Shown piece by piece: positions 9,523 through 64,000 of a stretch of 64,000 bases of DNA. Each line of letters starts with the position of its first letter. The first letter of the stretch is position 1. Below the pieces are notes generated by a model. The model had not been told where the DNA came from. It worked only from the letters and a program-made list of their open reading frames with translations, and did no database searches. The position numbers and the translations under genes were made by a program. Source of the DNA: Paraphysomonas bandaiensis (lineage: Eukaryota > Protista > Chrysophyceae); contig CBFFRP010000366.1 of the NCBI GenBank assembly GCA_965644295.1, positions 1 to 64,000 on the forward strand, read 5' to 3'.

Positions 9523-10290
9523 TATAAGCTGCAATTGTTTGGGTATAACATACCGACTGCGTATATATATTTTCCCAGATGCAGTTGGTAGGTACTTCTC
9601 AACATAGCCCCATCTAAATACGGCACTTCATAAACCATTTTACCGTTCACAATTGTAGTAAACCTTCCAACGCCCCGCAAGCAATTTTGTACATAGCATA
9701 ATATATAGCCTCTTCCAGTTCTTTATTTACACTTTATCATGAAATCGAACTGGCAATGATACTCGCAAGAAAACTTCGTAACACTGTAGGCCGATGCTTA
9801 GAATGTACAAGGCAATAAATGACACCGGTAAAAATGCTTTACAAATATAGTTCGATGTTCTAAAGTAAAGAGCAACTCCAACAACTTTAGAACGCAAAAT
9901 TTCCATAAAGATATATATACTCCAAGCACGTAGAGAACAACAAAAGAATCATCAAACTTTACTCATACAATTACGACATATATTTACTATTAGAGAAACG
10001 TAATTAATTACATCTATCGCTATATATACGAAATAAAAAACTAACAACATGGTTTGCTGAACGTCACTATAGTTGACATACCACAACAATTGCGTCTCTG
10101 ATACGCATAACTCCATACCATTACGTACACAACACAACCACAAAAACACAATAATGTATATTTCTGTACCGCACTACACTCATTTCCTTGCATAGAACAA
10201 GCACTGGAAGCGCGGGAACTGTAACAAGAATCTCCTGATGCGTTCGTTTGACTGCATCGACGACTGATATTGTTTTAACCTATAAACTGG

Positions 10291-16200: not shown

Positions 16201-19200
16201 TAACTACAGAAATACTGTATGCAACTCCTGGATACAGTAAGTCCCGTGGCACTATCAGGACGCCTGATGCTTCGTAATTGGTGTTCAAATAAGCAGTAAC
16301 CAAGGAAACATTCTCATGAGTTCCATAAACATTAAATGATACATTCACAAAGGGGCGCCCCCCTGATCCCTTGGATCCAGAAATATCTATAGGTAGTGAG
16401 TCACATGGTCCAATCTGAGAAGGTGATATAATCGATAGAGCGGGAACAATAGGCGTTTGCGGAGCATGTACTCTGATAGAGGCCAATGACCTAAATTGCC
16501 AAGTACTGCAAGCAGGACCGTTGTTCAGGACTTTACATTTAGCTCGAATCTTATTCGCTCGCAGTGTAATTACATCAGACACACCAACTACTCCACTCGC
16601 CCCAGGAAATATCGACACTCTGGAATCATCGACCCATAGACATCTCGTATCCTTCTGAATACCGGGAAACGAAAACACATCCATGCAGTTGAAATTATTG
16701 GTATATCCTGCACGATTGGTGGGTGCATCAAACAGCACTAGAATCTTAGTTCCATCTTTAAGAAAGGTCGCAGATTTCAATACTGGAACCGCAGGTTCCG
16801 CATCAACAGCAAGCACAGTGATAAAACTTGAGGGAATATAGGAAATGACATAATCACTTGCTGATAATCCTGACATTGTAAATGCCAAGGCGTACACACC
16901 AGCGTTCTGGCGAATATACGCCACATACTCAACAGACGACGAAGTGAAAGCCACAGACGATGGGACAAACGGATATACTGTTGAGTTTTGAAAGGCAGCC
17001 AGTGATACATTTAAATCATTAGGTATTACATCACCAGCATCGAGCTTCAATGCAACAGCCATGTCTTCTCCACTCGAGTACGAGGTCGCAATCAATTCAA
17101 CACTTAAAATTCGACAGCATGCCGTTTTTGCCGCTGATTTGGTCCCACGCATTAAATCAAAATCCATTGGAGTGTCTAATGCAGAGTATGTAGCGCAGTA
17201 CACATCATAATCTGAAGACGCAATTAAACCGTCAATGATAAATGGCACAGTCGTTGATGTAATCGATATCAAGTCGTTGTGAAGAAGAAGAGTACTAACA
17301 GTAGATGGAACAAATGAATCCGACGTTAGATACGCTGCGCAAACGAGAGACCCTTCCGGTACATCGACAGCTACTGTGGCTGTAATCGAGTTAGTTGTGC
17401 TGGATACAGTTACGCTCAATATATCCGATGCCACTGATAACTCGGTAAAAGCTATGTGCAATATGTTTAATATCGTAGGATAAAGGGGTTTCTCAACCTC
17501 ATCACATGGACTATCGTATATGATCGCAGATGGGGTAACAGTTGATGGCGTGCATGGAGAGCTAGTACAGTTCGCACACAGGAATGCAGAAGTCATGCTC
17601 CCACAACGACCTACCATCCACCTCGTATCATGACATTTGAACGACATGGAAGAAGACACGGTTGCCTTGGATACTGACAGAAGTGTGGCCACAATATCAG
17701 CAGCAGTTGCGCTATCGTTACAAGTCACAGTCACTGATTCGAGGTCAGCTGAGTAGTCTACTGTCGATATCATACTGAGAGAAGAAGCTGCATAGGTAAT
17801 CAATGTTGTCACAATATCGTCATTGACGAAGACATCCCATTCGTCACATGTACCGTACCCACGTTCACCTTTGACTACTAAGCTCGCAAAAGTACTTCTC
17901 GCTCCAAGGTCAATGCCATTGATATATGTATCATATTTATCTTTCCACAGCGTCATGAATGATATGGACGGAGACAGAGAAGGTACAAACGTAGGACTCA
18001 TGGAGAGTGTTGGTGGCAAAGTTGGATAGTGAGTAACTGTAGGAACTGGCGCGTATGTCGGTCGGCAAGTTGGAGATGACGTCGGTACCCTAGTAGGAAT
18101 ACTAGTAGGTGAAAATGTGGGAAACCTTGTAGGTGATATTGTAGGTTTAGATGATGGCACTGAGGTGGGATACGAGCTGGGATCATAAGTGGGAATGTAC
18201 GTGGGGTGCCCAGTCGGCTCCCCACTTGGCTGCCAACTCGGAACTACTGTTGGCATAGCAGATGGTATTCTCGAAGGTTGACTACTAGGCGAGGCACTTG
18301 GGAAAGATGAAGGCTGCCCAGAAGGAACAGTTGAAGGCAAGGTTGTTGGTAAACCAGATGGTCTACAACTTGGTTGACCTGTAGGCAATCCTGTAGGCTG
18401 ACCAGAAGGTTCGCCAGTGGGTTGGCCAGTTGGTTCCCCTGACGGCTGAGCACTAGGTTGGCTGGAAGGTTCGCCCGTCGGTTGTCCTGTAGGTTCCGCT
18501 GAAGGCAGGCCGGACGGTTCAACTGTGGGTTGCCCTGTAGGCTCCCCTGAAGGTTGGCTGGAAGGTACACCTGTGGGTTGACATGATGGCTGTTCTGTAG
18601 GTTCACTCGATGGCTGTCCAGTAGGATAACCAGATGGCCCACCTGTGGGTTGACATGATGGCTCACCTGTTGGTTCACCAGATGGTTTTCCTGTCGGCAG
18701 ATATGACGGCAGTTCAGAAGGGATCCCAGATGGCTGTCCTGTTGGTGGACACGATGGCTGTCCAGTAGGGATACCAGATGGCCCACCTGTGGGTTGACAT
18801 GATGGCTGCCCTGTTGGTTCACCAGATGGTTGTCCTGTCGGCAGATATGACGGCAGTCCAGAAGGGATCCCAGATGGCTCACCTGTTGGTTCACCAGATG
18901 GTTGTCCTGTTGGTGAACACGATGGCTGTCCAGTAGGATAACCAGATGGCCCACCTGTGGGTTGACATGATGGCTCACCTGTTGGTTCACCAGATGGTTT
19001 TCCTGTCGGCAGATATGACGGCAGTTCAGAAGGGATCCCAGATGGCTGTCCTGTTGGTGGACACGATGGCTGTCCAGTAGGGATACCAGATGGCCCACCT
19101 GTGGGTTGACATGATGGCTGCCCTGTTGGTTCACCAGATGGTTGTCCTGTCGGCAGATATGACGGCAGTCCAGAAGGGATCCCAGATGGCTCACCTGTTG

Positions 19201-22200
19201 GTTCACCAGATGGTTGTCCTGTTGGTGAACACGATGGCTGTCCAGTAGGGATACCAGATGGCCCACCTGTGGGTTGACATGATGGTTGGCCTGTTGGTTC
19301 ACCAGATGGCTGTCCTGTTGGTGGACACGATGGCTGTCCAGTAGGGATCCCAGATGGCTGACCTGTTGGTTCACCAGATGGTTGTCCTGTCGGCAGATAT
19401 GACGGCAGTTCAGAAGGGATCCCAGATGGCTGTCCTGTTGGTGAACACGATGGCTGTCCAGTAGGGATACCAGATGGCCCACCTGTGGGTTGACATGATG
19501 GCTGCCCTGTTGGTTCACCAGATGGTTGTCCTGTCGGCAGATATGACGGCAGTCCAGAAGGGATCCCAGATGGCTGTTCTGTTGGTTCACCAGATGGTTG
19601 TCCAGTAGGGATACCAGATGGCCCACCTGTGGGTTGACATGATGGCTCACCTGTTGGTTCACCAGATGGTTGTCCTGTCGGCAGATATGACGGCAGTTCA
19701 GAAGGGATCCCAGATGGCTGTCCTGTTGGTTCACCAGATGGTTGTCCTGTCGGCAGATATGACGGCAATCCAGTAGGGATCCCAGATGGCTGTTCTGTTG
19801 GTGGACACGATGGCTGTCCAGTAGGGATACCAGATGGCCCACCTGTGGGTTGACATGATGGTTGGCCTGTTGGTTCACCAGATGGTTGTCCTGTCGGCAG
19901 ATATGACGGCAGTCCAGAAGGGATACCAGATGGCTGTCCTGTTGGTGAACACGATGGCTGTCCAGTAGGGATCCCAGATGGCTCACCTGTTGGTTCACCA
20001 GATGGTTGTCCTGTCGGCAGATATGACGGCAGTCCAGTAGGGATCCCAGATGGCTGTCCTGTTGGTGGACACGATGGCTGTCCAGTTGGGATCTCAGATG
20101 GCCCACCTGTGGGTTGACATGATGGCTGCCCTGTTGGTGAACTCGATGGCTGTCCAGTAGGGATACCAGATGGCTGCCCTGTTGGTTCACCAGATGGTTG
20201 TCCTGTCGGCAGATATGACGGCAGTCCAGAAGGGATACCAGATGGCTGTCCTGTTGGTGAACACGATGGCTGTCCAGTAGGGATCCCAGATGGCTCACCT
20301 GTTGGTTCACCAGATGGTTGTCCTGTCGGCAGATATGACGGCAGTCCAGTAGGGATCCCAGATGGCTGTCCTGTTGGTGGACACGATGGCTGTCCAGTTG
20401 GGATCTCAGATGGCCCACCTGTGGGTTGACATGATGGCTGCCCTGTTGGTGAACTCGATGGCTGTCCAGTAGGGATACCAGATGGCTGCCCTGTTGGTTC
20501 ACCGGATGGTTGTCCTGTCGGCAGATATGACGGCAGTCCAGAAGGGATCCCAGATGGCTGTTCTGTTGGTGGACACGATGGCTGTCCAGTAGGGATACCA
20601 GATGGCCCACCTGTGGGTTGACATGATGGCTGCCCTGTTGGTTCACCAGATGGTTGTCCTGTCGGCAGATATGACGGCAGTCCAGAAGGGATACCAGATG
20701 GCTCACCTGTTGGTTCACCAGATGGTTGTCCTGTCGGCAGATATGACGGCAGTCCAGAAGGGATCCCAGATGGCTGTTCTGTTGGTGGACACGATGGCTG
20801 TCCAGTAGGGATACCAGATGGCTGTTCTGTTGGTGGACACGATGGCTGTCCAGTAGGGATCCCAGATGGCTCACCTGTTGGTTCACCAGATGGTTGTCCT
20901 GTCGGCAGATATGACGGCAGTCCAGAAGGGATACCAGATGGCTGTCCTGTTGGTGAACACGATGGCTGTCCAGTAGGGATCCCGGATGGCTGCCCTGTTG
21001 GTTCACCAGATGGTTGTCCTGTCGGCAGATATGACGGCAGTCCAGAAGGGATCCCAGATGGCTGTTCTGTTGGTGGACACGATGGCTGTCCAGTTGGGAT
21101 CTCAGATGGCCCACCTGTGGGTTGACATGACGGTAGTCCTGAAGGGAAAGGAGTCGGTGCAGGTGTCGGTCTCAAGCATTCATGGTAACTGGATTGTGTG
21201 AGGAAGAATGTTGTTAATTTCGTCTTTGAACATAGTTCGGAAGGGTAGACACCTGTGAACATATTGTTATCACCCATTAGAAGTTGTAATTTGGTTAGAC
21301 TGGAAAAAGAGTTGGGGAGAGAACCCGTAAAGGAATTGTATTGCAAATAGAGATTAACAAGAAAAGACATCTGACCCAATGATGAGGGGAGAGAACCCGT
21401 TAAGGAATTGTCATATAGGCCGAGATAACCAAGAGAAGTCATCTGACCTAGTGATGAAGGGAGAGTACCGATGAGAGAGTTGGAACCAATATTCAAATAT
21501 GTCAATGCAGTCATATTACCGATAAATGAGGGGAGAGGACCCGTTAAGGAATTGCTATGTAGATCGAGATAACCAAGAAAAGACATCTGACCCAATGATG
21601 AGGGGAGAGAACCCGTTAAGGAATTATCATATAGATTGAGATAACTAAGAGATGTCATCTGACCTAGTGATGAAGGGAGAGTACCGATGAGAGAGTTGGA
21701 ACTAATATTCAAATATGTCAACGCAGTCATATCACCGAATGATGAGGGGAGAGATCCTGATATCCCATAACTAGATAAGCTCACGCTGGTTATGTCTGAT
21801 CCTGTACAAGTGACTCCAATGAAACTGCACTTATTCCCCACATTCGCACAGGTCCATTCAGACCGTTTGGAGGTAACATCAGTAGCCTCAATGAAATCAC
21901 ACAGCACTGCCTCTTCCAGGCTAATTGTCGGTTCATCAGATGGTTGTCCTGAAGGAAAAGGAGTCGGTGCAGATGTCGGTCTCAAGCATTCATGGTAACT
22001 GCTTTGTGTGAGGTAGAATTCTGATAATATAGTCATTGTGCATAGCTCGGAAGGGTAGACACCTGTGAACATATTGCCATCACCCCCTAGGACTTGTAAT
22101 TCGGTTAGACTGGAAAAAGAGTCGGGGAGAGGACCCACTAAGGAGTTGTCATTTAGAATGAGAGCAGTAAGAGAAATCATCTGACCAAATGATGAGGGAA

Positions 22201-23092
22201 GAGGACCCGTTAAGGAATTGCTATGTAGATCGAGATAACCAAGAGAAGTCATCTGACCCAATGATGAGGGGAGAGAACCCGTTAAGGAATTGTCATATAG
22301 ACAGAGACCATGAAGAGTAGTCATCTGACCCAATGATGAGGGGAGAGTACCGATGAGAGAGTTGGAACTAATATTCAAATATGTCAACGCAGTCATATTA
22401 CCGAAAGATGAGGGGAGAGGACCCGTTAAGGAATTGCTATGTAGATCGAGATAACCAAGAGAAGTCATCTGACCCAATGATGAGGGGAGAGAACCCGCTA
22501 AGGAATTGTCATATAGACAGAGACCATGAAGAGTAGTCATCTGACCCAATGATGAGGGGAGAGGACCCGTTAAGGAATTGCTATGTAGATCGAGATAACC
22601 AAGAGAAGTCATCTGACCAAATGATGAGGGGAGAGGACCCGTTAAGGAATTATCATATAGATTGAGATAACCAAGAGAAGTCATCTGACCCAATGATGAG
22701 GGGAGAGGACCCGTTAAGGAATTGTCATATAGATTGAGATAACCAAGAGTAGTCATCTGACCCAATGATGAGGGAAGGGTACCGATGAGAGAGTTGGAAC
22801 CAATATTCAAATATGTCAATGCAGTCATATAACTGATAGATGAGGGGAGAGATCCTGATATCCCATCATAATATAAGTTCACTCCGGTTATGTCCGATCC
22901 TGTACAGGTGACTCCACTGAAACTGCATTTATTCCCCACATTCGCACAGGTCCATTCAGACCGTTTGGAGGTAACATTAGTAGCCTCAATGAATTCACAC
23001 AGCGCTTCCTCTTGTGAGGCAACTGTGAGAGTTATCAATTGAAAAATAAGTAAACTGATCAACAGAAATATACAGCGAATGAAAAGATTCAT
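10291..23092 (-). CDS. Giant LRR / PT-repeat / REJ-domain polycystin-1-like multi-pass membrane receptor (~4248 aa; exons 23092-12199 and 12143-10291)
   Basis: Signal peptide; two capped plant-type LRR modules (LxxLxLxxNSLTGPLP); about 1100 aa of PT/PS repeats; REJ-like region (VDASGSYDED); Cys-rich EGF-like segments; GPS-like C..TTCEC motif before a TM helix; further TM helices. A 55-nt gtaagt..tgtag intron (12144-12198) joins the two ORFs in frame (FDCVWGEE...MILKL). Confidence 0.85.
18030..21170 (-). repeat. Coding minisatellite (12-bp PTGQ/PSGE-type units in higher-order blocks)
   Basis: Tetrapeptide repeats PSGI/PTGQ/PSCP/PSYL/PSGE within the giant ORF. Confidence 0.95.
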
Positions 23093-23329
23093 ATGTATAC
23101 AAACATATACACAAACATATATACGAGAGAATAGAATGAAATATATGAGAGGTTATTGTGTGGATTATCATTACAATTGCTCGGGATAGGGTAGCCCAGC
23201 ACCCCAAAGCATGGAGTAGATGTACCAAGGGGATGATGTGATACTAGTATATTTCTATCATCACAGTAGCACAGTAGGCCCCCCCAATATACCATATGAT
23301 TACAGCACTGTATGTCTTACAGAGTACAC

Positions 23330-23860
23330 GTATGTATGTATGTATGTAGGTATGTAGGTATGTATGTAGGTATGTAGGTAGGTAGGTAGGTATGTATTTA
23401 TGTATGTATGTATGTATGTATGTATGTATGTATGTATGTATGTATGTATGTATGTATGTATGTATGTATGTATGTATGTATGTATGTATGTATGTATGTA
23501 TGTATGTATGTATGTATGTATGTATGTATGTATGTATGTATGTATGTATGTATGTATGTATGTATGTATGTATGTATGTATGTATGTATGTATGTATGTA
23601 TGTATGTATGTATGTATGTATGTATGTATGTATGTATGTATGTATGTATGTATGTATGTATGTATGTATGTATGTATGTATGTATGTATGTATGTATGTA
23701 TGTATGTATGTATGTATGTATGTATGTATGTATGTATGTATGTATGTATGTATGTATGTATGTATGTATGTATGTATGTATGTATGTATGTATGTATGTA
23801 TGTATGTATGTATGTATGTATGTATGTATGTATGTATGTATGTATTGTATGTATGTATGT
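23330..23860. repeat. (TATG)n microsatellite, about 530 bp
   Basis: Near-perfect TATG run at about 23399-23844 with TAGG variants at the left edge. Confidence 0.98.
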
Positions 23861-23875
23861 ACTCATTGTGGTATA

Positions 23876-24403: not shown

Positions 24404-27400
24404 ATGAAGAGAGCAAAATCTTCTAAAATCCGTGTAGAGGAACCGGTAGCAAAGATCAGGAGATCATCATGGATTGATCAGTTACTGTTTCCATCTCTAC
24501 CAGACCATTATACACTACGAAAGAAATTTCAGATAGCAAAGAACACCTCAACTCTGGGAGTGTGTTATGATATATCGCAAGATATATGCTCTATACTAAT
24601 GTGTGCAGTATATGTAACTACAACGTATTATCGCTCTTATGATGTGGTGCACCTCCTGCTGATGTTAGATATCGCCATATCTGGATATGTGATGGTAGAT
24701 ATATTATTTAATTGGTATCTCAATGGTAGTGTACTGTATTTATTGGAGTTTACGGCTATAGTGGACTTGTTATCAGTGTTTCCAACTTTCTTCGGAGTTG
24801 TATTCGTTATCATATTGAAGCAAGATATTAGCTTTATACTGACACAGCTTGTATCGACTCTACGATTGATTCGAGTCATTCGAATATTTAAAACTTTGCG
24901 CTTTTTTCATGGCATTAGAAGAGCAGAGTTGAAATTGATCTTGACTCTTGCGTGTATGGTATTTGTTACTGCTGGAATTATTCAGTTCTTGGAAAGTGAC
25001 TTCAAGCAGAGCCAACTGGATTGCCGGTATATTAATGAAGACACGAACTGGCAACCGTCGTGTAGCCGCACGGTTCCAAGCGTGGAGTTGGACTCCTGTG
25101 ACTGTAACGAAAATTTTTGCGAGGGCTTGTATGATGTAAGTTTGTGTATTAGTTTTGTATTGAATTTACCTTGTCTGTAGTATAAAAACGAGCGTGGAAA
25201 GCCTTCAATGGTTCGTTGTCAAACGCTCAAATATCACACAGCAGTATACTATATCATCATTACTACCGCTATGGTTGGGTACGGCGACATTTTACCTTCA
25301 ACTATTTACTCCAAGGCGATAATTATTCTCTTAATCATGGTATCTTTGGTAACTATCCCGGCCCAAATCAACGAGTTAAACATGCTACTCAGCAAGAAGT
25401 CCTCCTATCGAGAAGCATACAAGCCAGGCAGGGGCGATAACCATGTGATTGTATGCGGTTTCGTGAACAATAAACATAAAGTGGAACAGTTCTTCAAGGA
25501 GTTCTTTCATCCAGATAGAATGTTTTCTTCTGGGCCTGAGTTTCATGCCGTTCTTCTTTGTCCCGTTGAACCCACAGAAGAAGTTAAGAATCTGATATTT
25601 AGCCCAATGCTAGACTCCCGCGTCACTTATGTGATTGGGTCTGCACTCTCTGTAGAGGACCTCAAGAAAGTGAGGGCAGATGTAGCGTCGGGAATGTTTT
25701 TTTTGTGTAATACTGAGGTTTCAACAGCTGCGGCTCAGATTGAGGATGCTACCACGGTGATGCGTACCTTGTCTGTGTCTAATTTCAACCCAGACTTGGA
25801 GTGTTTTGTTCAGGTTCTACGCCCTGAAGATAGAGTAATCCTCAAAGATAGTGATGTAGAGGTCATCCTTTGTCTGGATGAATTCAAAACGACGCTTATG
25901 GCACGTAATTCTTTATGTCCAGGATTCTCTACGTTTGTGGAAAATATATTTCATAGCTTTGGCAACGTGCCTGCGGAAATGGAAGCAGCTCTACCTCCAT
26001 GGTACGGAGAGTACCTCTATGGTGCTCGCATGGAATTTTATTATGTTCCCCTGGACCAAGATTTCCTTAGGGCTATAGATTTCAGCTTTGACCAGTTATG
26101 TGAAAGCGTATACCTTGAGTGGGGAATTGTTGTATTGGGTTTGTGTAATGCTGAGCAAGACTCGATAACTTTCAACCCTAGCCGGAAAGACCTGGGATCA
26201 CACAAGTCTCTTAAGTCTTTTTTCCAAGAATTTAATGTTGCCCTTATCATGGCTGACGACAAGTTCCAGGCAGAAGACGTATCTCGAGGACTTTCGGATG
26301 TTGCAAAGGTGGGATCTATACTACAGAAAATCGAACTTGAGGAGGATAAGTTTCCTGTTAGACATCGTGTGTCTCGAATGGGAAAGACGGTTGGAGAAAG
26401 GGGTAAGAAGAGGGGACTCCAGCGGAATAGGGTACTGGCGCCCCAACAGCGCAGCCCGGGAGCCGATATCGGGAAGCTGGGAATGTCATTTCTCCAAAAA
26501 CTTCAGACGAAGTCTTTTAAGGGTAACGCAGTGCGCACTGCGTCACAGTGTGGAGACTTCATGTCGGATTCGGATGATTCGGACAACGATGAGCATTATA
26601 TTGGCTATGCCAAGAAAGCGACAGAAGTAAATGCGACTGATGTTTTGGAGGGAGGGGAGGATGGGTTTACCCGTGCCTCCGTCATGTACACTAAAAGTCA
26701 CAGCAACGTTAGCAATATCTCTGATCCATTCTTGAAGATAGAAGTGAATAACGAAACGAAGAAACCAGTACGGAAGGCAAGACAGTCCATTATATCTAAG
26801 GCAATGAGTAGTGTGCCAATTGTACGCAGCATATCTAATGAGACCACTTTATCTGGTGGTTCCAGGGCAGCTAGAAAGAGTATGGTCATCCCAGCTCTAA
26901 AGAAGAAACCCATCCGGCGTGGATCCAAGATGCCCATAAAGGAGGTCGAAGATGACAGCGGTTCAAATGAGTCAGACGACATGAACAAGACCCAAACTGA
27001 GAATGAAGGTACGGATAAACCTGCTGATGCCGTTCCTGCGAATGGGGATATGGCCGTTGAAGAAACTGTTTCTTCCACTCCAGCCAAGAACTCAGGGCCG
27101 GAAACTACGAAACCTTCTCCCCAAACGAACACTTTGTGGCCGTCACATCGTGACGAGAAGAAAATTCACCCCACAGCGGATAATTCTTCTGGTGAACATA
27201 CACCAATGATATCTGTTGGCTCAATCTCTGAAGGCACGAATTCCTCTCCAAGTCGAACAACAGCCCCTTTTGCCAGCCCTTTGGCGACCCCTGTATCTCG
27301 CACTAAACTTCCCCCACTAGTGATTAGTACAGAAAAGACTATAAAGCATAAGCCGAAGAAAAAGTCGAAGAAAAAAGTAGCAGGCCCAAGTTCCGACCTC

Positions 27401-29399
27401 GTTAGTGCTGAGAAATTAGCTTCTGTCAAAAAGAAGAAGATAGCGAAAATTAAAGTAGCTAAGAACACTGTAACCAGAGGTTAGTGTCAATACTCTTTGT
27501 TAAATAAAATATAATTGGGTGTATAGGAAGCATGAAAGATGTACTGAACGAATTGCAGATGCGAGTTCCACCTGAAGGTACGAAAAGGAGCACTCGTTCA
27601 GGAAGTCAGGATTATGTTGTTCCTAACATTGAACCTGGAGAGAAGACACGGCAGTATCATGATGAAGAAATAAAAGAGCACGTCGCCACTCCGGATATAG
27701 AAACTTGTAAGAAGCCTGAAAAGGAGTTGGAGCTAACTCCAAACAAATTTAATTCAGTCAAAGAGGAAAGACACCTGACAGCAAGTATCAAGGCACCGAT
27801 ATGAATTCTAAGCGACAAAGTCTGCTTACCCGGTCTGCTCGTGCCTTTTCCTCGTTCATTAAATCTCAGGGAGGAAGTAGTCGAATCAGTCCTGGTCCTG
27901 CTGAAAAATCGAACGAACATGTCGATGAAAGTGAGTCAACATCACCGAATATCATAGGCCGGACCCGATCAACTAGCACAGACGCCCTTACCCCCGGGAA
28001 TTATGGTAAGGACTTATATATCAGTTTCGTTTGATATGTCACACTGGTTATCGCAGGGTTGGAATCAAAGGAAGTTTCAGATCTGACAATGCTCAGAAAC
28101 CACATTATTGTCTTTGGAAACACAGATTGCCTGTCAATTTTTATTCCGGAGTTAAGAAGACCTGCGGTTCGTGGTGAAACATATCACCCCTTGGTTATCG
28201 TCTCCCCGACAGAGCCTCAAGGTTGGAAGATAATCAAGGAGAGATACAATGATATATACTTTTTGCGGGGATCTCTTACAAGGAGTGCAGTTTTCAATAG
28301 CGCGAATATCCCCAAGGCTTTCGCCGTAATTCTTTTTGCAGATAGGGACCGCACTTCGCTAGAGTTGTTAGACACGAATATTGACTCACAGACTCTATTT
28401 ACCTACCTCAAGCTGGAACAGCACATTCCTCCAGACGTTTTCTTTTCTGTAGAGTTAACTTGCAGCTCCAATGTGGCAGGTAGCAGTTGTTCGAGTATTG
28501 ATTGCTCCGTTAATATTGCTTTTCAGTTTTAAACTCTACTATCATGCGACGCGTGCAAAAGTCTGGAACGGATGGAACAAGGGCAATTGTACGGGACAAA
28601 TCCAAAGATAGCATCGCAATATTCGGGAATATAGAGGAAGGGTTGAGTGCAGGAGAAAGTCAAACAGGCCGGTTTACAACCAAACGCACGACGTTGCGTC
28701 ACTCTCTGGCTGGGTCTTCTCCCGGAGCCCGTCCGAGACAGTCTCTTGTGGGACTCCCGCGACCGAGTGTTGTCGAGCGCCGCTCTTCAACAATGCACCG
28801 GCGTTTTAGCATTACAGAGGTTGAAGATGACGTAGAGATGTCACGTGAGGGCAATACACCTGGTGGAATGTCGTCTCAGGATGATAATTCCTTCTGGGAC
28901 GCGACGGACACACACCATGTTCTTCCCGTGTTTGCTTCTGCCAGAACTTATGTGCCTTCTAGCTTCGAATCCCTATTGGTTCAGAGCTTTTTTGGAGTTC
29001 TGACGCCTCTAATCTGTGAGAAGTTGGTGTGTGGGCAGGCTGGTCAATCCGTAGTTCAAATCTCTATGCCCACATCCCTTGTGGGTAGAATATTTGTAGA
29101 TATGTTTAGAATATTTTCCTATCACCATGTAAGTGCTATCACAATATCCCTCTTTTCTTGTTTTATTATGATATTTAGGTTATTTGTTTCGGGTTGTATC
29201 GAGCGCCGCAGAAGCGTCTTGGGGCTGCCCTACCATACATATATATTGCACCATCGGTTCGTATGTTTTGCTTTGGGTTTAAATCGTTAAACATTGTGTG
29301 TAGGCTGTGAGTGTTCTTCATAAGCACGATAGAGTTTTTTTATACGGTAAACCATCTAGGATTGCTAGGGCGGTAGCTGCATGCAAAACTGTGAAGTGA
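24404..29399 (+). CDS. Slo/BK-family (RCK-domain) potassium channel, multi-exon
   Basis: S1-S4 with RLIRVIRIFK voltage-sensor arginines; pore helix and filter TTAMVGYGD; RCK1 (HVIVCG..FFKEFFHPDR..GSAL..DL.KVRA); RCK2 (NHIIVFG..RGSL); C-terminal GLYRAP..PYIYIAP. Introns at about 25136-25180, 27480-27526, 28006-28057, 28480-28527, 29129-29178 and 29257-29303. One junction near 27650-27800 is unresolved. Confidence 0.88.
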
Positions 29400-29934: not shown

Positions 29935-30090
29935 TTGTTGAGTTTTGCTGTTTGAGCAATTAAAAGCTGTAATTCTAAGATATTGGAATTATGACGGTTA
30001 CTGGAGAATACAGTAGTGATGCTGTATTATGAGAAGTGATATCATGACGATGTAAGATCGTACTAGAAATGAGTGGTAGTAGAGATAACG
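29935..30090. repeat. Dispersed repeat, inverted homologue of about 9300-9522
   Basis: See the 9300-9522 feature. Confidence 0.7.
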
Positions 30091-30217
30091 TGACATATTG
30101 TTTATTATATTTATTATAATCTTCTCTTATATTAACTTGATTAATGAGTGAATACTCGTCCAGTTAACTTAGTAATCATCCAATTGTGTCATAACTTGAC
30201 AACATTCCTATTAGAAT

Positions 30218-30338
30218 TTGACATTATTTGCTAGGGTTTGCTATTGGTTCTTGTCAAACAACCGTAGCGTCTTGTCATCTTCCCCATCCCTACAACTACC
30301 ATATCAGAAGTTGACATTATTTGCTAGGGTTTGCTATT
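30218..30338. repeat. 28-bp direct repeat containing TAGGGTTT (telo-box)
   Basis: ttgacattatttgctagggtttgctatt at about 30218 and 30311. Confidence 0.75.
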
Positions 30339-30622
30339 ATCAATTGATAAGATGAAATTATAATCATTACATGATAAAGAACCTCAGTTGTATTCGATGT
30401 GTTCAACACCATTCATTTACTACTAAGTGTACAAACCACACACTCAGTGATCGTATCCTGTATAGTCACAACTTCTGCTTCAGTTTCATACTACACAATA
30501 TAATGCACTAATTACATATATATCTTTCGATCCTTGCATCTCAATTGCAAGAATAAAGAATCTTCAGATCTCAACTAACCTTACAGAGCTAAACACCATA
30601 TCGATCAGATAGAAAAAGATAT

Positions 30623-33600
30623 TACACAACATATATGATTCCGGATGTAAGCAATTTCCATCACGAACTGTCGGAAGAGGGAGCTATGTTAATCATCGAG
30701 GCCAATAAACATCACACCACATAACATTATACAATATAAAACTACAACATCATCATACATACGGGTGCACATATAAATCATTCCGAATGGGTGGCCTCTC
30801 ATACACAACATATATGATTCCGGATGTAAGCAATTTCCATCACGAACTGTCGGAAGAGGGAGCTATGTTAATCATCGAGGCCAATAAACATCACACCACA
30901 TAACATTATACAATATAAAACTACAACATCATCACACATACGGGTGCACATATAAATCATTCCGAATGGGTGGCCTCTCATACACAACATATATGATTCC
31001 GGATGTAAGCAATTTCCATCACGAACTGTCGGAAGAGGGAGCTATGTTAATCATCGAGGCCAATAAACATCACACCACATAACATTATACAATATAAAAC
31101 TACAACATCATCATACATACGGGTGCACATATAAATCATTCCGAATGGGTGGCCTCTCATACACAACATATATGATTCCGGATGTAAGCAATTTCCATCA
31201 CGAACTGTCGGAAGAGGGAGCTATGTTAATCATCGAGGCCAATAAACATCACACCACATAACATTATACAATATAAAACTACAACATCATCACACATACG
31301 GGTGCACATATAAATCATTCCGAATGGGTGGCCTCTCATACACAACATATATGATTCCGGATGTAAGCAATTTCCATCACGAACTGTCGGAAGAGGGAGC
31401 TATGTTAATCATCGAGGCCAATAAACATCACACCACATAACATTATACAATATAAAACTACAACATCATCACACATACGGGTGCACATATAAATCATTCC
31501 GAATGGGTGGCCTCTCATACACAACATATATGATTCCGGATGTAAGCAATTTCCATCACGAACTGTCGGAAGAGGGAGCTATGTTAATCATCGAGGCCAA
31601 TAAACATCACACCACATAACATTATACAATATAAAACAACAACATCATCATACATACGGGTGCACATATAAATCATTCCGAATGGGTGGCCTCTCATACA
31701 CAACATATATGATTCCGGATGTAAGCAATTTCCATCACGAACTGTCGGAAGAGGGAGCTATGTTAATCATCGAGGCCAATAAACATCACACCACATAACA
31801 TTATACAATATAAAACTACAACATCATCACACATACGGGTGCACATATAAATCATTCCGAATGGGTGGCCTCTCATACACAACATATATGATTCCGGATG
31901 TAAGCAATTTCCATCACGAACTGTCGGAAGAGGGAGCTATGTTAATCATCGAGGCCAATAAACATCACACCACATAACATTATACAATATAAAACTACAA
32001 CATCATCACACATACGGGTGCACATATAAATCATTCCGAATGGGTGGCCTCTCATACACAACATATATGATTCCGGATGTAAGCAATTTCCATCACGAAC
32101 TGTCGGAAGAGGGAGCTATGTTAATCATCGAGGCCAATAAACATCACACCACATAACATTATACAATATAACAAACATCATCACACATACGGGTGCACAT
32201 ATAAATCATTCCGAATGGGTGGCCTCTCATACACAACATATATGATTCCGGATGTAAGCAATTTCCATCACGAACTGTCGGAAGAGGGAGCTATGTTAAT
32301 CATCGAGGCCAATAAACATCACACCACATAACATTATACAATATAAAACTACAACATCATCACACATACGGGTGCACATATAAATCATTCCGAATGGGTG
32401 GCCTCTCATACACAACATATATGATTCCGGATGTAAGCAATTTCCATCACGAACTGTCGGAAGAGGGAGCTATGTTAATCATCGAGGCCAATAAACATCA
32501 CACCACATAACATTATACAATATAAAACAACAACATCATCATACATACGGGTGCACATATAAATCATTCCGAATGGGTGGCCTCTCATACACAACATATA
32601 TGATTCCGGATGTAAGCAATTTCCATCACGAACTGTCGGAAGAGGGAGCTATGTTAATCATCGAGGCCAATAAACATCACACCACATAACATTATACAAT
32701 ATAAAACTACAACATCATCACACATACGGGTGCACATATAAATCATTCCGAATGGGTGGCCTCTCATACACAACATATATGATTCCGGATGTAAGCAATT
32801 TCCATCACGAACTGTCGGAAGAGGGAGCTATGTTAATCATCGAGGCCAATAAACATCACACCACATAACATTATACAATATAAAACTACAACATCATCAC
32901 ACATACGGGTGCACATATAAATCATTCCGAATGGGTGGCCTCTCATACACAACATATATGATTCCGGATGTAAGCAATTTCCATCACGAACTGTCGGAAG
33001 AGGGAGCTATGTTAATCATCGAGGCCAATAAACATCACACCACATAACATTATACAATATAAAACAACAACATCATCATACATACGGGTGCACATATAAA
33101 TCATTCCGAATGGGTGGCCTCTCATACACAACATATATGATTCCGGATGTAAGCAATTTCCATCACGAACTGTCGGAAGAGGGAGCTATGTTAATCATCG
33201 AGGCCAATAAACATCACACCACATAACAAACATCATCACACATACGGGTGCACATATAAATCATTCCGAATGGGTGGCCTCTCATACACAACATATATGA
33301 TTCCGGATGTAAGCAATTTCCATCACGAACTGTCGGAAGAGGGAGCTATGTTAATCATCGAGGCCAATAAACATCACACCACATAACATTATACAATATA
33401 AAACAACAACATCATCATACATACGGGTGCACATATAAATCATTCCGAATGGGTGGCCTCTCATACACAACATATATGATTCCGGATGTAAGCAATTTCC
33501 ATCACGAACTGTCGGAAGAGGGAGCTATGTTAATCATCGAGGCCAATAAACATCACACCACATAACAAACATCATCACACATACGGGTGCACATATAAAT

Positions 33601-33880
33601 CATTCCGAATGGGTGGCCTCTCATACACAACATATATGATTCCGGATGTAAGCAATTTCCATCACGAACTGTCGGAAGAGGGAGCTATGTTAATCATCGA
33701 GGCCAATAAACATCACACCACATAACATTATACAATATAAAACTACAACATCATCACACATACGGGTGCACATATAAATCATTCCGAATGGGTGGCCTCT
33801 CATACACAACATATATGATTCCGGATGTAAGCAATTTCCATCACGAACTGTCGGAAGAGGGAGCTATGTTAATCATCGAG
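30623..33880. repeat. Tandem array of 179-bp units (18 units plus a partial; one 174-bp and two 160-bp deletion variants)
   Basis: The motif ggaagagggagctatg recurs 19 times at about 179-bp spacing from about 30673 to 33853. Confidence 0.98.
30623..33880 (-). ncRNA. Tandem array of box C/D snoRNA genes (SNORD100-like, 18S rRNA 2'-O-methylation guide); 19 guide-bearing copies, 17 with a complete terminal stem
   Basis: Minus-strand unit: GGCCUC-G-AUGAUUA(C)-ACAUAGCUCCCUCUU-CCGA(D')-CAGUUC-GUGAUGG(C')-...-U-AUGA(D)-GAGGCC. It has a 6-bp terminal stem in correct k-turn register, and guide GCUCCCUCU is complementary to conserved 18S AGAGGGAGC. Confidence 0.8.
30793..30882 (-). ncRNA. Representative single snoRNA copy (90 nt)
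   Basis: ggcctcgatgattaacatagctccctcttccgacagttcgtgatggaaattgcttacatccggaatcatatatgttgtgtatgagaggcc. Confidence 0.8.
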
Positions 33881-34011
33881 CATATAACACTCATTAGACA
33901 TGTTAATCATGGTATGGGTCTGCAGTCTATCACTGTGGTTGCATGTGATGGAGTATGAGGTTAGGATGTCCTGAGCTGATTTGAATTATTGCACTGGGAG
34001 GGCTAAAAACG

Positions 34012-34019
34012 TAGGGTTT
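34012..34019. promoter_or_regulatory. Telo-box (AAACCCTA) in the putative bidirectional promoter between the snoRNA array and PSMA5
   Basis: tagggttt at 34012. Function is inferred only from plant precedent. Confidence 0.3.
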
Positions 34020-34332
34020 TTAGATAAAGAATGGATTTTGGATATCCACAGAGTCGCTATTTTTATAATACAGTTGTCCGTATGATAAGTGTAGGTGTGG
34101 ATATCTACAATATATCTACTGCACAGCTATGTACGTATGCTGGCGTACTTCGATAGGAGGAGATAGATAGTATACAGCAGTACATGTCTAGCAGAGTACT
34201 CTACACAAGCAGTGCATAATAGTCGCATCACAGTTCATTCCTCTACCTGCCTGTCTGCCTATCCAGCTTACTCTTTCACCAATTACGGCTCAACTCAATC
34301 ATTTGATTGTGCCACTATAGTGAATATATTAA

Positions 34333-35493
<1,161 letters not shown>

Positions 35494-37061
35494 GATTGAC
35501 TACGTTCTTACGAAGTACTTTGCGAAAGCAGTAATGATATTTAGCGATTCAGTTGAATTAGTGTGTTCAAGAGAAAGTTATGTTGCCCATTGTACTTCAT
35601 CTAGCATTAGCGTGTTTATGGAGCGATGCTCTAATTAAAAAATCGTAGCTTTTATTACTTCACGCATTATTGTTACGTACACACTCACTTCACGGTATAA
35701 CATAAAACCAACCGAATGATACATATTTGCTGTAAAGAAATAAAATACATAGTAAAAGGTGTGAAGTATGAATGCTGCACAAGACATAGTATACAACAGC
35801 ATCACACATGCCGGTGTGCATATATTCCTTGTCTTCGATAAGAATCTGTACATCTTTATTCCCAACATGAATAGGAAGCAGCATGAATTTGCTGCCAGCA
35901 ACTGCAGTCATTTGTTTAGGTAACATACAATATTTGTTTTGGCATTCTCGCTTTTTATCACTAGTATTGCTGCTTCAATACGACACTCATGAAGTGTTAG
36001 TATTAAGTATCATATTTAACATAGATTTAGTAGGCTTGCTATCCTGAGGTGAGGCGGTATAATAGAGATGACTTCCGTGTGACACGCACTAATTCCCGTC
36101 CGTGAGTTTCACATTAATTTCAGTTTTTACTAGATATATAGATTTCACACATATATATGAAAAGAAATAGCTAAGAGTAAAACAAGCAGTCTGTAAAATA
36201 CAGTTCCTCACCCCACCACTACATGTCATATACGTCATTATCGCAATGAAAAGACTCTCAGGGATTCTATTGACGTGAAGTAACAACTATTGCAGGTCAG
36301 AGCCTACATTGGATATATAGACTCCACTCCACTCCACCACAGGCTCCTCGACACAGAGACGTAGCTACAGACAAACTCCGCCGAGGCTGTGATGTGGTCT
36401 CTGCAGGCACAGCTATCAGCCTGCCTGGCAATCCATATTGCTGTCGGCGACGCTTGCATCGGAGATCGACGTCTTGTATAAGTAAATCCTAAACGTCATC
36501 GAAGCAGTAAACAACAACAATATCATTCTAAACAATATCACTACAAGATGCGAAAGGCAGCCCACAAGATAATAATTGAGGAGTAATAATATACTGAGAT
36601 AAAAATCTGACGTGGAGCGCATCTCGAGGAAGCTGGCGTCGAGTACTCGGACACGGAGCGCAAGTTGGCTGCACTGAAGACGTCTTCCACCGAGCGCATC
36701 CGGATATTGACTGAAAGCGCCTGCTAGAAAGGGAGAACATCAGGATAGTGTTGCCGTGACACTAACCCTAATCCCCCTCTCCGAATGAAAGCCATCGTGT
36801 ACCTGATGCGGTACGGAGAGGAGATGATGGCGGAGGACGGTAAGGCCAAGCAGATGTCATGTACAAGTAGCGGTGTGTTGCATGTAGATATAAAGGTTGC
36901 TACTAGCACGGCTAGACTGGCGTTTGCTAACACATTAACACATCTGTTTATCTAGACGTCTCACATCACACTTAAGATGATCAAAATGGAGCCCTACATT
37001 TCGCTGTCCTTTCATGAACACTGTGCACCCACCTTGCTGACTACGTACGAGTTGTAGGGCA

Positions 37062-37470
37062 TGTATGTAGGAAGTATGTATGTATGTATGTATGTATGTA
37101 TGTATGTATGTATGTATGTATGTATGTATGTATGTATGTATGTATGTATGTATGTATGTATGTATGTATGTATGTATGTATGTATGTATGTATGTATGTA
37201 TGTATGTATGTATGTATGTATGTATGTATGTATGTATGTATGTATGTATGTATGTAGGAAGTATGTATGTATGTAGGAAGTATGTATGTATGTATGTATG
37301 TATGTATGTATGTATGTATGTATGTATGTATGTATGTATGTATGTATGTACTGTAGGTAGGTAGGTACAGCAGGTAGGTAGGTACGTATGCATGTAGGTA
37401 TGTATGTGCAGGAGGTATGTATGTAGGTATGTAGGTATGTAGGTAGGTAGGTAGGTAGGTAGTGTGTATG
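37062..37470. repeat. (TATG)n/(TAGG)n microsatellite
   Basis: Visible run. Confidence 0.97.
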
Positions 37471-37582
37471 TATATTCACAGCTAGTGGAATGCAGAGTGC
37501 AGGAGTGGATTTCCAGTCACTTTAACAGTCTCTTCCATGTAATTCTACACACAAATTCTTTAACTCCAGCTCTTATAGCCTC

Positions 37583-42048: not shown

Positions 42049-44499
42049 TCAGGAAGCAGTCTGTAATCGATGGTATATAGCCCTGTGTGCTACTAAAATC
42101 ACACTTGTTATAAAAGTACAAAACAACAAAAACTATATACCTGTCAGAACTCCTTGAAGATCCATGAAAGTACAGGGTTTAATTAAGACATCATCTCCTC
42201 CAGCAGCGAAGAAAGATGGTCGTTCTTCTGGCATCGCATTTCCAGTAAGGAATGAAATATATCCTTTATATCCACCCTCTCTCATCATACGAGTTGCCTC
42301 CACGCCATTCATGACAGGCATGTTTACATCCATAAAAACAATATCGTAAGGGTCTCTAACATCAGATGCGTCTTTCACTAATTTAACTGCTTCTGCACCA
42401 TCGCTTGCTGGAGAAACAGATCCCACCAGCGGTGACAACATGCGACACATCATCTTCCGGTTAACGGCCGAGTCGTCCACTACTAGCACTCGACCTATTT
42501 CCACGTCGTTCACAGTTAGCTCTTCTACATCATTCTTACAACTTGAGGCCTCTGAAACGGCTTCCGTATTTCCCATAATATCTACTATGGCAGGCTTACG
42601 CATCATAGAGCGCAACATGTATGTAACAGATGGAAACATATTTACACGGGGAAACTGAGACTGTTGTGCTGGTGAATCTACTGGGTCATGAGAAAGGTAT
42701 TCTCGAGGTAGTACATCCACCTCGACGTAAAATACTGAACCCTTGCCAGGAATAGATGATACGCCTAATCTACCTCCATGATGATCTATTATTTCCTTAG
42801 ATATCCATAAACCTAGACCAGAACCACCACCATCTTGAAGTTCTGCCGCATTGAACTGAACAATTTCGTTAAACAAACGCTTCTGGTTCTCCTACACATT
42901 TCCATTAGTACATTCACATGACACAAGGCACAGTCATTTTTACCTCAGATATACCAGGCCCAGTGTCATGCACCTCAATCCGTAGTATACTTGCAGTCTC
43001 AACACTCTGTGAGCTTCGCGGCACATGGTACTGTGATCCAGAGGATCGATCATCCACACCCGAGCTCTTCCGGAATAACGACAGGGTATTTCTATTCCCA
43101 GGAGCTGATTGCTCATATTTGTCCAGTTGATCGGAAGAATGTCTTGTTGTAAGAAAAGCATACACGTCTACCCTTCCTCCAGTAGGAGTAAACTTCAGTG
43201 CATTCGATACTAGGTTACGGAGTACTTGGCTGAATTTCATTACATCGACATAAATATGACTATCTTCGGCATCGATGGAAGGGTCAATGTGCGTGTCATC
43301 ACTGTGCGCAAATATTATATCTTTTTGCTGGGCCTGACACACATCAATTTAGTGTCACAAATAATCCAGCTATCAACGTACCTGTATGCCGAAGGGGTCA
43401 ATGACAGTGGATAGTAAATCTCGGATGGATACATCCTTCCGATCCAACTGCATGTTTCCACCCTCGATTTTGTTAACCACAAGAAGATCACTCAGAATAT
43501 TTATTGCAATACAACACGATGATTCTATGTCCTTCACAATGTCGTGCACCTCGGTCTTTCTTTCTTTCGTCGATGGCGCAGTGCGAGTTGAGAGCAGCTG
43601 GATACCCATATAAACAGTGTTAAGAGGGGTTCGGAGTTCATGGGAAATGTAACTAACAAAATCTCTTTTGGACTTAAGGGTATGCTATAATATGTTAGAA
43701 TATTGATTATGACAACGTATATTTTTACCTGTGCTATTGTACTTTCATGTCTAGCTTGTCGTCCTGGAACAACGGTTGCAATTATGCATATGAATATATC
43801 GACAGCGACCATGAATGTTAGCTGCTCTGCTCCGTAAACAACTATCGCTTTTAACACCGCCCCCAAAAAGGGAAGAGACGCGTATAGAGTATTAATATAT
43901 TCCTCATTATTGATCCGGTAACTCATAAATCGTTTAAGGCACATCATAAACAGCAATGCATGACTGATAGCGCTGACAACAAATGTTGCAGAAATCCATT
44001 TAACATTTACATTTGGCAAGCCGAATATGAAGCAGAGCCGGACGTACAACCGAAGCATTGATGTAACAGCTATAATAGTTGTACCAATGACTGTAGTAGT
44101 GCTACAGCGTGGGTGTAGAAGAAAGCTCAACAGGGCACCTTTCATTAGAAACTCACGACAAAACACACAACATACAGTGATAGATATCGTGGTAGAGGTC
44201 ACATGCCGAGTTGAATAAAAACTTATCGAGTTGGGAACAATAAGAGCCGCAAGAAACACCCATCGAGGGCCAGTGATGTGAAAGGGTAATTTATAATCCA
44301 ATACAGTGTCGAGAAGAAGCGGAAGTGATGTGGAGACAGCAGCCATACAGAGGAATCGATGCATCTGCCAATCATAACTCGAGTTGGAATCAAAGTAACT
44401 GAAATCAGCATCAGTTGATGTTAAATAGAGAGGAAGGAAACAGGTGACACTTCCGATGATGAAGATAGACAGACAGATCTGCTTATAAGGACGAGACAT
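42049..44499 (-). CDS. Hybrid sensor histidine kinase, copy A (multi-TM sensor, HisKA, HATPase, receiver); intact
   Basis: SHELRTPL H-box, NLVSNALKFT N-box, VHDTGPGI G1, GSGLGL G2; receiver VLVVDDS..FMDVNMPVMNG..KP. Introns at about 43673-43730, 43334-43381, 42892-42943 and probably one near 42140, so the last exon is tentative. Confidence 0.92.
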
Positions 44500-44875
44500 G
44501 GCGATAGATGCGGCTTCTGATAGCTACTTAAACATTACCTTGATATGATATATATGAGCTCTACCACTCCATTGTGTTGGTGTGGTATAGGAGGGAGTTC
44601 GTTTTGGTGTCATAGGGAATCCCTTCCGCAGGACAATGATGATGTATGTGTATCTCTCTATATATCAGGGAACTGGTGGATTATATATGGAGATCTACAT
44701 ACATAGAGAGGACACATACGAACCTGGAGGAAAATATATGGGAAGAGTATTGTCATAGAAGTAATCGAATCATATAGAAGTATATAGAATTGCATGGATT
44801 TAATTGGTGGAGGTTAGATCTAGTGTAGTCGTATGTAACCCGTTCATTCGTATCCTTCTGCACATGTTTTCTATA

Positions 44876-46468: not shown

Positions 46469-47686
46469 TATCATATATTCGCCCGGTAACGGATGGATAT
46501 CGTATGTACGGGTTGCATATAGGGAACAGTTGGACCATCCATCAGTCTTATCTTCCCACATCCCTCCGACGTAAGTTCACTTTAACAGAACCAAACCTTC
46601 TAATGCACTATCCACTTAAATTAACAATACCATAAGGTCCCATTGCATGATCTAGCACATCTCTTCATACAGCAATGGATGAGCAGTGGAAGAAGCTGTG
46701 TCTCTTGTTATTTGTAACAGCAAGTGTGACTTGTTTTCTACCGTTATATTTAACTGACAACGATGCGAACTTCGAATATTTTGATCCAAACTCTAAATTT
46801 GATTGGAAAGAACATAGACTACTATGTTTGGCAGCTGTCTCTACTGCACTGCCACTGCTGTTAGATACCGCATTGGATTATAAGCTTCCATTTAACACGA
46901 TTGGGCCTCGATGGGTATTCGTCATATCTCTTATCATTCCTAACGTGATATGCTTTCATGCTACAAAGATTGTATCTTCTCGTACGATATCAATTGGTGT
47001 TTGTTGTGTATTTTGTCGAGAACTCTTGACGAAAGGCGCTCTGTTGAGCTTTCTTCTGCATCGTAATTGCAGTAAGGGCACTGTACAGATAACGACATTC
47101 ATTTCACTAGCTCTAATCTTCCAACTACTTTGCCGATTGTGGTACATATTTCAAGTACCTGGCCTTGGTGATGTATGGATGATTGTTGCATTTGTAGCTG
47201 ATGTGTGCGCTGAGCTAATGTTGGGTTGGGTATGTATAACGCGCTTCCTCACACATAAGAAAGGGGTGGAAAATAATACTGATACATTTTATGCATTTCT
47301 GTCTTTGGTTGGTCATATCATGAAGTATATCATGGTATTTGGACCTCAAGAGCCTACATACATTGTTGTGGTGGATATATTCATAGGTATTATTGCAACC
47401 GTTGTTCCAGGGCGACAAGCTAGACATCAGAAATCCGTTGCTGAGGTGAACTACAACATCTATACTTTTAACATCGAATAATTTGTTTATGCAGCATACT
47501 ATTCAGTCAAAGAGAGACTTCGTTAGTTACATTTCCCATGAACTCCGAACCCCTCTTAACACTGTTTATATGGGTATCCAGCTGCTCTCAACTCGCACTG
47601 CGCCATCGACGAAAGAAAGAAAGACCGAGGTGCACGACATTGTGAAGGACATAGAATCATCGTGTTGTATTGCAATAAATATTCTG

Positions 47687-48874
47687 TATGACGCAGCCTC
47701 GTTTGACAACTCAACTGTCACCTCACAGTTTGGTTTGATAACCAAGACTATGGCTCGTGATAACGCTAACTACTATCACTGTATAGGAATCAAGACAATG
47801 AGACCAAAGAAGTGATATTATTACAGGTAAACTTATGTTTCAATCAACTATACTCGAGTGACTGACTCCCGCGAAGAATCAGCACGCAAACACCACCGCT
47901 AGTGATGTCAGGTCGCTAGTACCCAAGTATGGTTAACATAAACAAAACTGAGTCACAACAGAAACATAAAGTATGAAAACAACCGCAGAGCTGCACACAC
48001 ACAACGTCATCCATGTTACACTGTGTTGCAACACACAACCACAACGCAGGCTGTGTCATACAAGCAGTATAACAATATACAGTCATGTCAACTACTCTAT
48101 CAAATACGGTTGTACAACACTGTATAATGTATATCGTGTTGCATTCCTCATAACTACAATTGTACTTGGAAAATACTAGCTAACGTACACTTTCATAACA
48201 TAACAACAATCTTGCAGCAACATGCCACCTGCACGTCCTTAAGCTCAGAGTGTATGTCTAAGGCGAAGAGATCCAAGAAAAGACGTGGTAAAGCCTCCCT
48301 GCAAAGGTATGAGGAGTCTCGGAGAAAGGCTATCCGAGAATATGCTGCAGAGCGCCGTGCACATGATATTGCTGCACGATGTCCTCAAGGTGTCTTAGAC
48401 AAGTCTGGTAAGCTCTGCAAAGTAGTTCCTTATCTCTACAGTTCTTCCGCAGAATGTGCACCCGAGGTTTGTTCCGCCGTATTGGACTTCTACCTCCAGT
48501 GCCTGCTCGCAATTTGCTTCATGCCCCACCTAATCATGGCCGGTACGTAAACACTCTGTATGATGCTGACCTCGCTGCCGGTATGGATTACAACTGTGAG
48601 TTTAGCGTTGATGAGTCTGGGTTGGATGTGGTCTGGGTGAAGACTCTGAGACCTATATCCGAAGGTGAGGAGCTGATTGCTGACTATGGTGAGTGGTATC
48701 ACCGCAAGAGTAAGCTACGCCTTAAGTGAGTAGTCATTTCTCCTTTTGTGGTAACTAATAATTGTTGTTATCTCTGAGTGTTTTCTTGGTAGTTAGTCTA
48801 TCTAGTGTCTTGTAGCCCCTTAGGAGAACACTATAGCCACGTAAGTAAGGCACGCGAGATGCCACGTGGTCACA
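47687..48874. mobile_element. 1188-bp insertion with 4-bp TSD (TCTG) and TATGAC...GTCACA ends; solo-LTR-like
   Basis: The empty site in paralog A reads aatattctgagtgatc. Here it reads aatatTCTG|tatgac...gtcaca|TCTGagtgatc. A related fragment lies at 8770-9109. Confidence 0.88.
48454..48729 (+). CDS. SET-domain-like ORF carried inside the insertion (possibly with an upstream basic exon from 48254)
   Basis: GRYVNT...NCEF...VWVKTLRPISEGEELIADYG matches the SET C-terminal signature RxxNH..N...xRxIxxGEELxxDYG. Confidence 0.6.
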   Translation: MCTRGLFRRIGLLPPVPARNLLHAPPNHGRYVNTLYDADLAAGMDYNCEFSVDESGLDVVWVKTLRPISEGEELIADYGEWYHRKSKLRLK

Positions 48875-63555: not shown

Positions 63556-63585
63556 ATCTACAAGGATCTCACCCTCCCTCCCTCT

Positions 63586-63722
63586 GTATGTATGTATGTA
63601 TGTATGTATGTATGTATGTATGTATGTATGTATGTATGTATGTATGTATGTATGTATGTATGTATGTATGTATGTATGTATGTATGTATGTATGTATGTA
63701 TGTATGTATGTATGTATGTATG
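63586..63722. repeat. (TATG)n microsatellite
   Basis: Visible run about 30 bp upstream of the MLO-like ATG. Confidence 0.97.
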
Positions 63723-64000
63723 TGTGTTAGTCTCTGCAGATGATCACATCATCTTCACTAGTAAGCGATGGGCTATAGCAGGTATAAGTAGAAGACCCTT
63801 TCCGTTCATGTGTAGATTATAATACATACATAGCTATATGGAGAAGTTGAAAGGAATGTGTGCTTTAACGCCTACTGCCATATTCATACCCCCCCCTGCC
63901 CTGTACTGTGGGCCCGTCTGTAACCGAGACACTCTATATGTACTGCTGTATACTCCATATGTACTGTACTGTACCACCTGCTGCTGGAGCTGCAGTACTA

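Follow-up and report, generated by a model that had tools for sequence, protein, structure and literature searches.

The 179-bp satellite-like repeat in the window, i.e. the stretch of 64,000 nucleotides of Paraphysomonas bandaiensis DNA analysed here, is very probably a working locus of a SNORD100-like box C/D guide RNA, which was amplified in place and is likely expressed as one unspliced, multi-copy precursor from the minus strand. Sequence evidence supports the reading of the array core as a SNORD100-like guide for the methylation of 18S G381, and polycistronic expression is supported indirectly.

Organization of the array

Tandem Repeats Finder returned a 179-bp array at 30623–33880 with 98–99% matches. 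When parsed on the minus strand, the repeat resolves into 19 occurrences of the core that follow each other head-to-tail from 33883 down to about 30623 (Table 1), as the initial annotation had proposed. Its further claim of a 90-nt element in each unit stands for the 17 internal copies 2–18, whose cores are identical; it fails for copies 1 and 19, both of which are damaged. The perfect terminal stem is confined to the internal copies and missing from the end copies, and copy 19, judging from its sequence, is probably non-functional. Units measure 179 bp in 15 cases, 160 bp in two and 175 bp in one, with spacers of 89 nt (n = 15), 70 nt (n = 2) and 85 nt (n = 1), 18 in total; the 19th unit is cut short. 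Five spacer variants are interspersed along the array, and no variant falls inside any core. This spacer-only variation, resting on about four events, is weak evidence for selection. In the 62.6-Mb assembly, the array DNA was found at this one place only.

We identified no processing signal in the spacer, and its fold was not significant (z 0.55). In a fold modelled for three units, a near-palindrome of neighbouring spacers would pair, which may serve as a lead only. A perfect RUGAUGA in the spacer was considered as part of a second snoRNA and rejected: it has neither a matching D box nor a stem, and the 19-nt deletion hits it. About 25 nt upstream of copy 1, at 33900–33910 of the minus strand, an isolated ATGATTAACAT (box C and 4 further nt) is possibly the remnant of a 20th copy.

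Table 1. Coordinates of the array, of its elements and of its neighbours in the window
Feature	Position	Strand	Basis or remark
Tandem array, 19 snoRNA cores and 18 spacers	30623–33883	−	Minus-strand parsing
Copy 1, intact boxes and guides, terminal stem of only 3 bp	33794–33883	−	Unique 5′ flank
Copies 2–18, 17 identical 90-nt box C/D snoRNA cores with 6-bp terminal stem	30793–33704	−	Model R1, E 7e-7 genome-wide
Copy 19, cut off within the D box, lacks the 3′ stem	30623–30703	−	
Box C AUGAUUA (example: copy 3), U in place of G at position 6	33531–33537	−	k-turn geometry test
D′ guide (copy 3), duplex of 10 bp with 377–386 of the own 18S	33516–33525	−	−21.1 kcal/mol
Box D′ CCGA (copy 3)	33512–33515	−	SNORD100 model alignment; homologues have CCGA or CUGA (included in the search pattern)
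Box C′ GUGAUGG (copy 3)	33499–33505	−	SNORD100 model alignment
Extra element UCCGGAAUC (copy 3), 9 bp with own 18S 370–378	33478–33486	−	Pairing to own 18S
Box D AUGA (copy 3), A at position 1 compensates U at C-box position 6	33461–33464	−	
Spacer (example), GU-rich, site of all sequence variation between internal copies	33366–33454	−	
Single-copy gap between array and PSMA5, candidate bidirectional promoter	33884–34232		
Proteasome alpha subunit gene, alpha-5 (PSMA5), 6 exons	34233–35657	+	Recognisable sequence; head-to-head with the array
Decayed dispersed repeat, ~88% to many copies	30244–30576	−	47 nt past the 3′ end of the array

Box C/D anatomy

The elements first read into the unit, i.e. 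the GGCCUC/GAGGCC stem and the boxes C AUGAUUA, D′ CCGA, C′ GUGAUGG and D AUGA, are all present as claimed. D′ and C′ are spaced by 6 nt, and both align to the SNORD100 model. Boxes C and D each depart from the consensus at one paired position. With U at C-box position 6 and A at D-box position 1, the usual G-C pair becomes U-A, and by their pairing the two odd boxes are a compensatory pair. The k-turn consists of the 6-bp stem, a 3-nt bulge, GA/AG, U·U and then U-A in place of G-C.

An ordinary satellite might resemble a snoRNA by chance, or a repeat might have been inflated during assembly. To a chance likeness, single rRNA matches lend some weight: among 20,000 dinucleotide shuffles of the 179-nt unit, 87% contained one 18S-complementary 9-mer. 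Such a 9-mer followed by a D-like box was found in 3.2% of the shuffles and two adjacent 9-mers in 3.5%; k-turn geometry of C and D boxes with a closing stem of 6 bp, which speaks against coincidence, arose in 0.015%. The real unit combines all these features on one strand.

Ribosomal target and relation to SNORD100

The guide given in the initial annotation does pair with 18S, although its first A remains unpaired; the duplex therefore has 10 bp, of which nine are Watson–Crick and one is G·U, or 11 bp if the first C of D′ is included. The genome's own 18S contains both target segments, 377–386 and 370–378, and on it the D′+5 rule selects G381, which bears out the predicted target. As the guides align in register, G381 would be the equivalent of human G436, and SNORD100 is the listed guide for 18S G436 (PMC12288042).

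At gathering cut-offs, an Rfam search of the window returned nothing. The best sub-threshold family was SNORD100 (RF00609) with 24–26.9 bits against a cut-off of 58 (E 0.002–0.013); box C, guide, D′ and C′ are in register with its consensus, and its top 18 matches in the 62.6-Mb genome are array copies. The SNORD100 match that had been expected was hence obtained with respect to family and register, but not to score. Because the score lies under the gathering cut-off, which may be counted in favour of a chance likeness, we file the gene as SNORD100-like and not as a member of the Rfam family. The SNORD100-like identity as such is upheld by the best Rfam family, the guide register and the target in the own 18S. 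A plant homologue had been expected to match as well. With the covariance model of snoR30 (RF00046), presumably the plant family that is the clan partner of SNORD100 (clan CL00073), no array copy appeared among the genome matches up to E 10.

For a D-side guide, we found only weak, G·U-rich rRNA matches, the LSU assembly being fragmentary. The rDNA is probably mis-assembled: the 18S gene is directly preceded by a fragment of LSU rRNA at L015 (G000:C525) 9731–10000, the 5.8S gene has no LSU after it, and LSU pieces are scattered over several contigs.

UCCGGAAUC sits between C′ and D, and its 18S duplex abuts that of the guide. HBII-429 is another name of SNORD100. Extra rRNA pairing in an unused second guide region has been described, with HBII-429 among the human cases; in the reported cases it overlaps the guide duplex by one or two nucleotides, and in yeast it boosts methylation up to five-fold (PMC3116282). 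We considered whether UCCGGAAUC might by itself guide methylation of the adjacent U and rejected this, because there is no D-like box at +5 and because homologues place the element 6–13 nt before box D.

Homologues and the DDX6 intron

Metagenomes were searched with a pattern of C box, guide, D′ and the start of C′ only, from which the vertebrate-type guide was excluded; this yielded 40 loci with 33 distinct matches. The extra element, which was no part of the pattern, or a close variant of it is found in 24 of the 33 (about 8 sequence types), 13–17 nt after C′. Most of the homologues have canonical UGAUGA/CUGA boxes. One locus (L054), with UGAUUA, CUGA and no extra element, may from its sequence be a chance match. 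The closest homologue, L041, carries the identical UGAUUA/AUGA swap on a different 5-bp stem. Common to the array and this relative, the C6/D1 swap provides natural covariation support for the k-turn pair.

In L041, the gene is a single copy (L041:1189–1279, minus strand) inside an intron of a DEAD-box helicase, which from its sequence we read as DDX6/Dhh1. The orthologous DDX6 intron of the present genome (L066:1116–1165) has the same position, is about 50 nt long and holds no snoRNA. From an intronic copy in L041 and an empty matching intron here it follows that the gene relocated in one of the two lineages, in either direction. PSMA5 synteny was found at none of the 40 homologue loci.

A sequence-only model was built from 13 metagenomic homologues, L041 included and the window excluded. 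It recovered each of the 19 copies at E ≤ 1e-6, and no further match in the genome fell below E 0.15; as far as such models reach, the array is the genome's only credible source of a SNORD100-like guide. Near the main match, the model gave a second, weaker one at L024:3461–3526 (−) and at L049:5–45 (+), possibly neighbouring paralogues. In another eukaryote, the same guide occurs in 2–6 tandem copies that have diverged and are interspersed with truncated ones (L063:317–1666, L032, L036, L055, L044), and local multiplication of a SNORD100-like gene is thus not unique.

Sequencing runs and expression

We compared four sequencing runs with one unit and its upstream flank; the runs with this DNA are marine. 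In X8, a DNA run from another sample and another study, the head-to-tail joint reached a depth of 205 versus 2.6–4.6 in the single-copy flank, i.e. about 45 times more. This tandem joint at high depth establishes that the array is real and not an assembly artefact. The X8 strain may have about 45 copies or more, depth being not equal to copy number. Spacer variants occur in the runs too, and as in the assembly all variation lies in the spacer. Taken with the interspersed variants, the independent reads, the conserved homologues with both guide and extra pairing and the search with the homologue model largely refute a fortuitous or assembly-inflated satellite, a reading we hold to be exceedingly improbable.

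The runs X9, X14 and X17, from three studies, contain spliced PSMA5 without intron contigs, with a poly(A) tail in X9. Since PSMA5 is spliced, we read all three as RNA, though two are labelled as probably DNA. In each of them, the repeat unit is present unspliced, spacer fully included, together with the tandem joint. Unit depth was 43 in X9, 9 in X14 and about 5 in X17, against 1175, 21 and 9–13 for PSMA5. A 19-nt gap in X14 is the 160-bp DNA variant and not an intron. Over the unique 5′ gap (33893–34227), no RNA contig was found in the three RNA runs. The contigs, which are strandless, fit an unspliced multi-copy precursor, and DNA carry-over of 1–2× could also produce the unit signal, most easily in X9.

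Carry-over would suit a mostly silent, snoRNA-derived satellite, in which expression is limited to one copy or a few and the copy number reflects neutral drift. Such a satellite might well have damaged end copies and a transposon-like remnant adjoining it, and recent amplification alone explains near-identical units. However, with no other copy of the guide in the genome and none in the matching DDX6 intron, and with the perfect stem kept in the internal copies only, we consider this improbable. It alters the number of working copies, not the identity of the gene.

Genomic neighbourhood

The initial annotation described the array as non-intronic. This agrees with our finding that none of the coding genes on its strand extends across the array, that the unit has no usable splice sites and that the RNA contigs are unspliced. 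A layout with one copy per intron was rejected, because 7 of the 18 spacers lack the sole AG that the unit has outside its core and because the RNA contigs keep the whole spacer.

Alternatively, an unstable, non-coding host transcript of the minus strand might contain the whole array within a single intron, with the copies being freed from its lariat and then separated by cleavage. Such an intron would be framed by a donor-like site (34148) and by a branch/acceptor-like stretch whose last position is 30591, and an intronic location is what the closest relative has. Yet the would-be 5′ exon (34149–34227) has no RNA contig in three runs, including the one in which PSMA5 reaches a depth of 1175, there is no loose contig end at the donor, and the would-be 3′ exon enters the decayed repeat after 15 nt. 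A single host intron thus has little probability, and we prefer an array that is transcribed on its own.

On the opposite strand, some 350 nt separate the start of PSMA5 from copy 1. Within the intervening gap, AAACCCTA occurs at 34012–34019 on the minus strand; it is a motif known from plant snoRNA promoters and here only a lead. A sigma-70 promoter scan is irrelevant in this context, the host being a eukaryote.

Beyond the 3′ end of the array, the decayed repeat appears LTR-like, as suggested by intact copies that begin with TGTTG. Two different dispersed repeats lie side by side at 29936–30576 on the minus strand and adjoin the array; the 266-bp element (96–98%) next to the LTR-like piece is often found on other contigs as a pair spaced by about 1.5–2 kb. 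A BK-type potassium channel gene follows on the plus strand at about 25200–29300. At 12119–23152 of the minus strand, the window has one open frame of about 3,660 amino acids with a signal-peptide-like start, leucine-rich repeats, PT repeats and a REJ domain, and the 72/144/216-bp repeats at 18455–22851 are coding repeats of this frame and not RNA genes. Two similar, inverted histidine-kinase-like genes are located at 42136–44523 (−) and 46651–50289 (+), of which one appears to be interrupted near 47700–48900. TATG microsatellites of 35–133 copies occur at 23330–23861, 37061–37473 and 63585–63727.

Discussion

We propose that transcription of the minus strand likely starts in the gap shared with PSMA5 and runs through several units, probably by RNA polymerase II. 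By analogy with known box C/D biogenesis, the precursor would be cut in the spacers and trimmed to ends protected by the k-turn, and the resulting RNA of about 80–90 nt would be bound by Snu13, Nop56, Nop58 and fibrillarin. With the guide on 18S 377–386 and the extra element on 370–378, this particle might then 2′-O-methylate G381, the extra pairing presumably aiding the reaction. The array may have expanded by unequal crossing-over with ongoing homogenisation. Unequal crossing-over fits, because the core–spacer repeats end on a core and because the end copies are damaged.

The vertebrate SNORD100 gene is a single intronic copy. The array resembles SNORD100/HBII-429 in the guide and its place between box C and D′, in the D′–C′ spacing, in the target and in having an extra rRNA-pairing element; it differs by its compensatory, non-canonical C/D boxes, its sub-cut-off score and its 19 tandem intergenic copies. 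Polycistronic snoRNA clusters of trypanosomatids, plants and yeast usually mix different snoRNAs, whereas here one gene recurs with identical cores in a satellite-like manner. In the mammalian imprinted arrays SNORD115 and SNORD116, one box C/D gene is repeated in tandem tens of times, with one copy per intron and, to our knowledge, no rRNA target. In contrast, the array unit is unspliced and has a canonical housekeeping target in 18S. SNORD116 has been classed as non-canonical (PMC12288042). In trypanosomatids, several snoRNAs derive from one Pol II precursor (PMC6562600), and the title of a reference cited in PMC2784804 names repeated snoRNA clusters in Leptomonas. In the literature searched, whose coverage is incomplete, we found no report of snoRNA arrays or homoclusters in protists or in Paraphysomonas.

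On contig C434 of the same genome, 57 tandem U14 matches are spaced by about 255 bp, likewise head-to-tail, near-identical copies of one conserved snoRNA. The uniqueness that the initial annotation implied is thus overstated, given both this U14 array of about 57 copies and the 4–6 tandem copies of the guide in another eukaryote. Compared with known snoRNA clusters and arrays, identical housekeeping guides in an unspliced and apparently intergenic array represent a variant, and the locus is one case of a genome-wide tendency towards tandem snoRNA gene arrays. We may speculate further, and with more doubt than confidence, that much of the housekeeping snoRNA set has moved into rDNA-like, concertedly evolving arrays under dosage selection. 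This guide would then have left its DDX6 intron for a stand-alone array with a promoter shared with PSMA5 and with a previously undescribed route of spacer cutting in these protists.

The RNA and its target are ordinary. Its amplified array is the unusual part, and the genome-wide pattern is the stronger result. The locus looks like a satellite and is missed at the Rfam cut-off, so that repeat-masking can conceal working housekeeping RNA genes. Together with the other arrays of this genome, it offers a system for asking why the copy number of a guide RNA would climb 20–50-fold and how one precursor is processed into identical copies.
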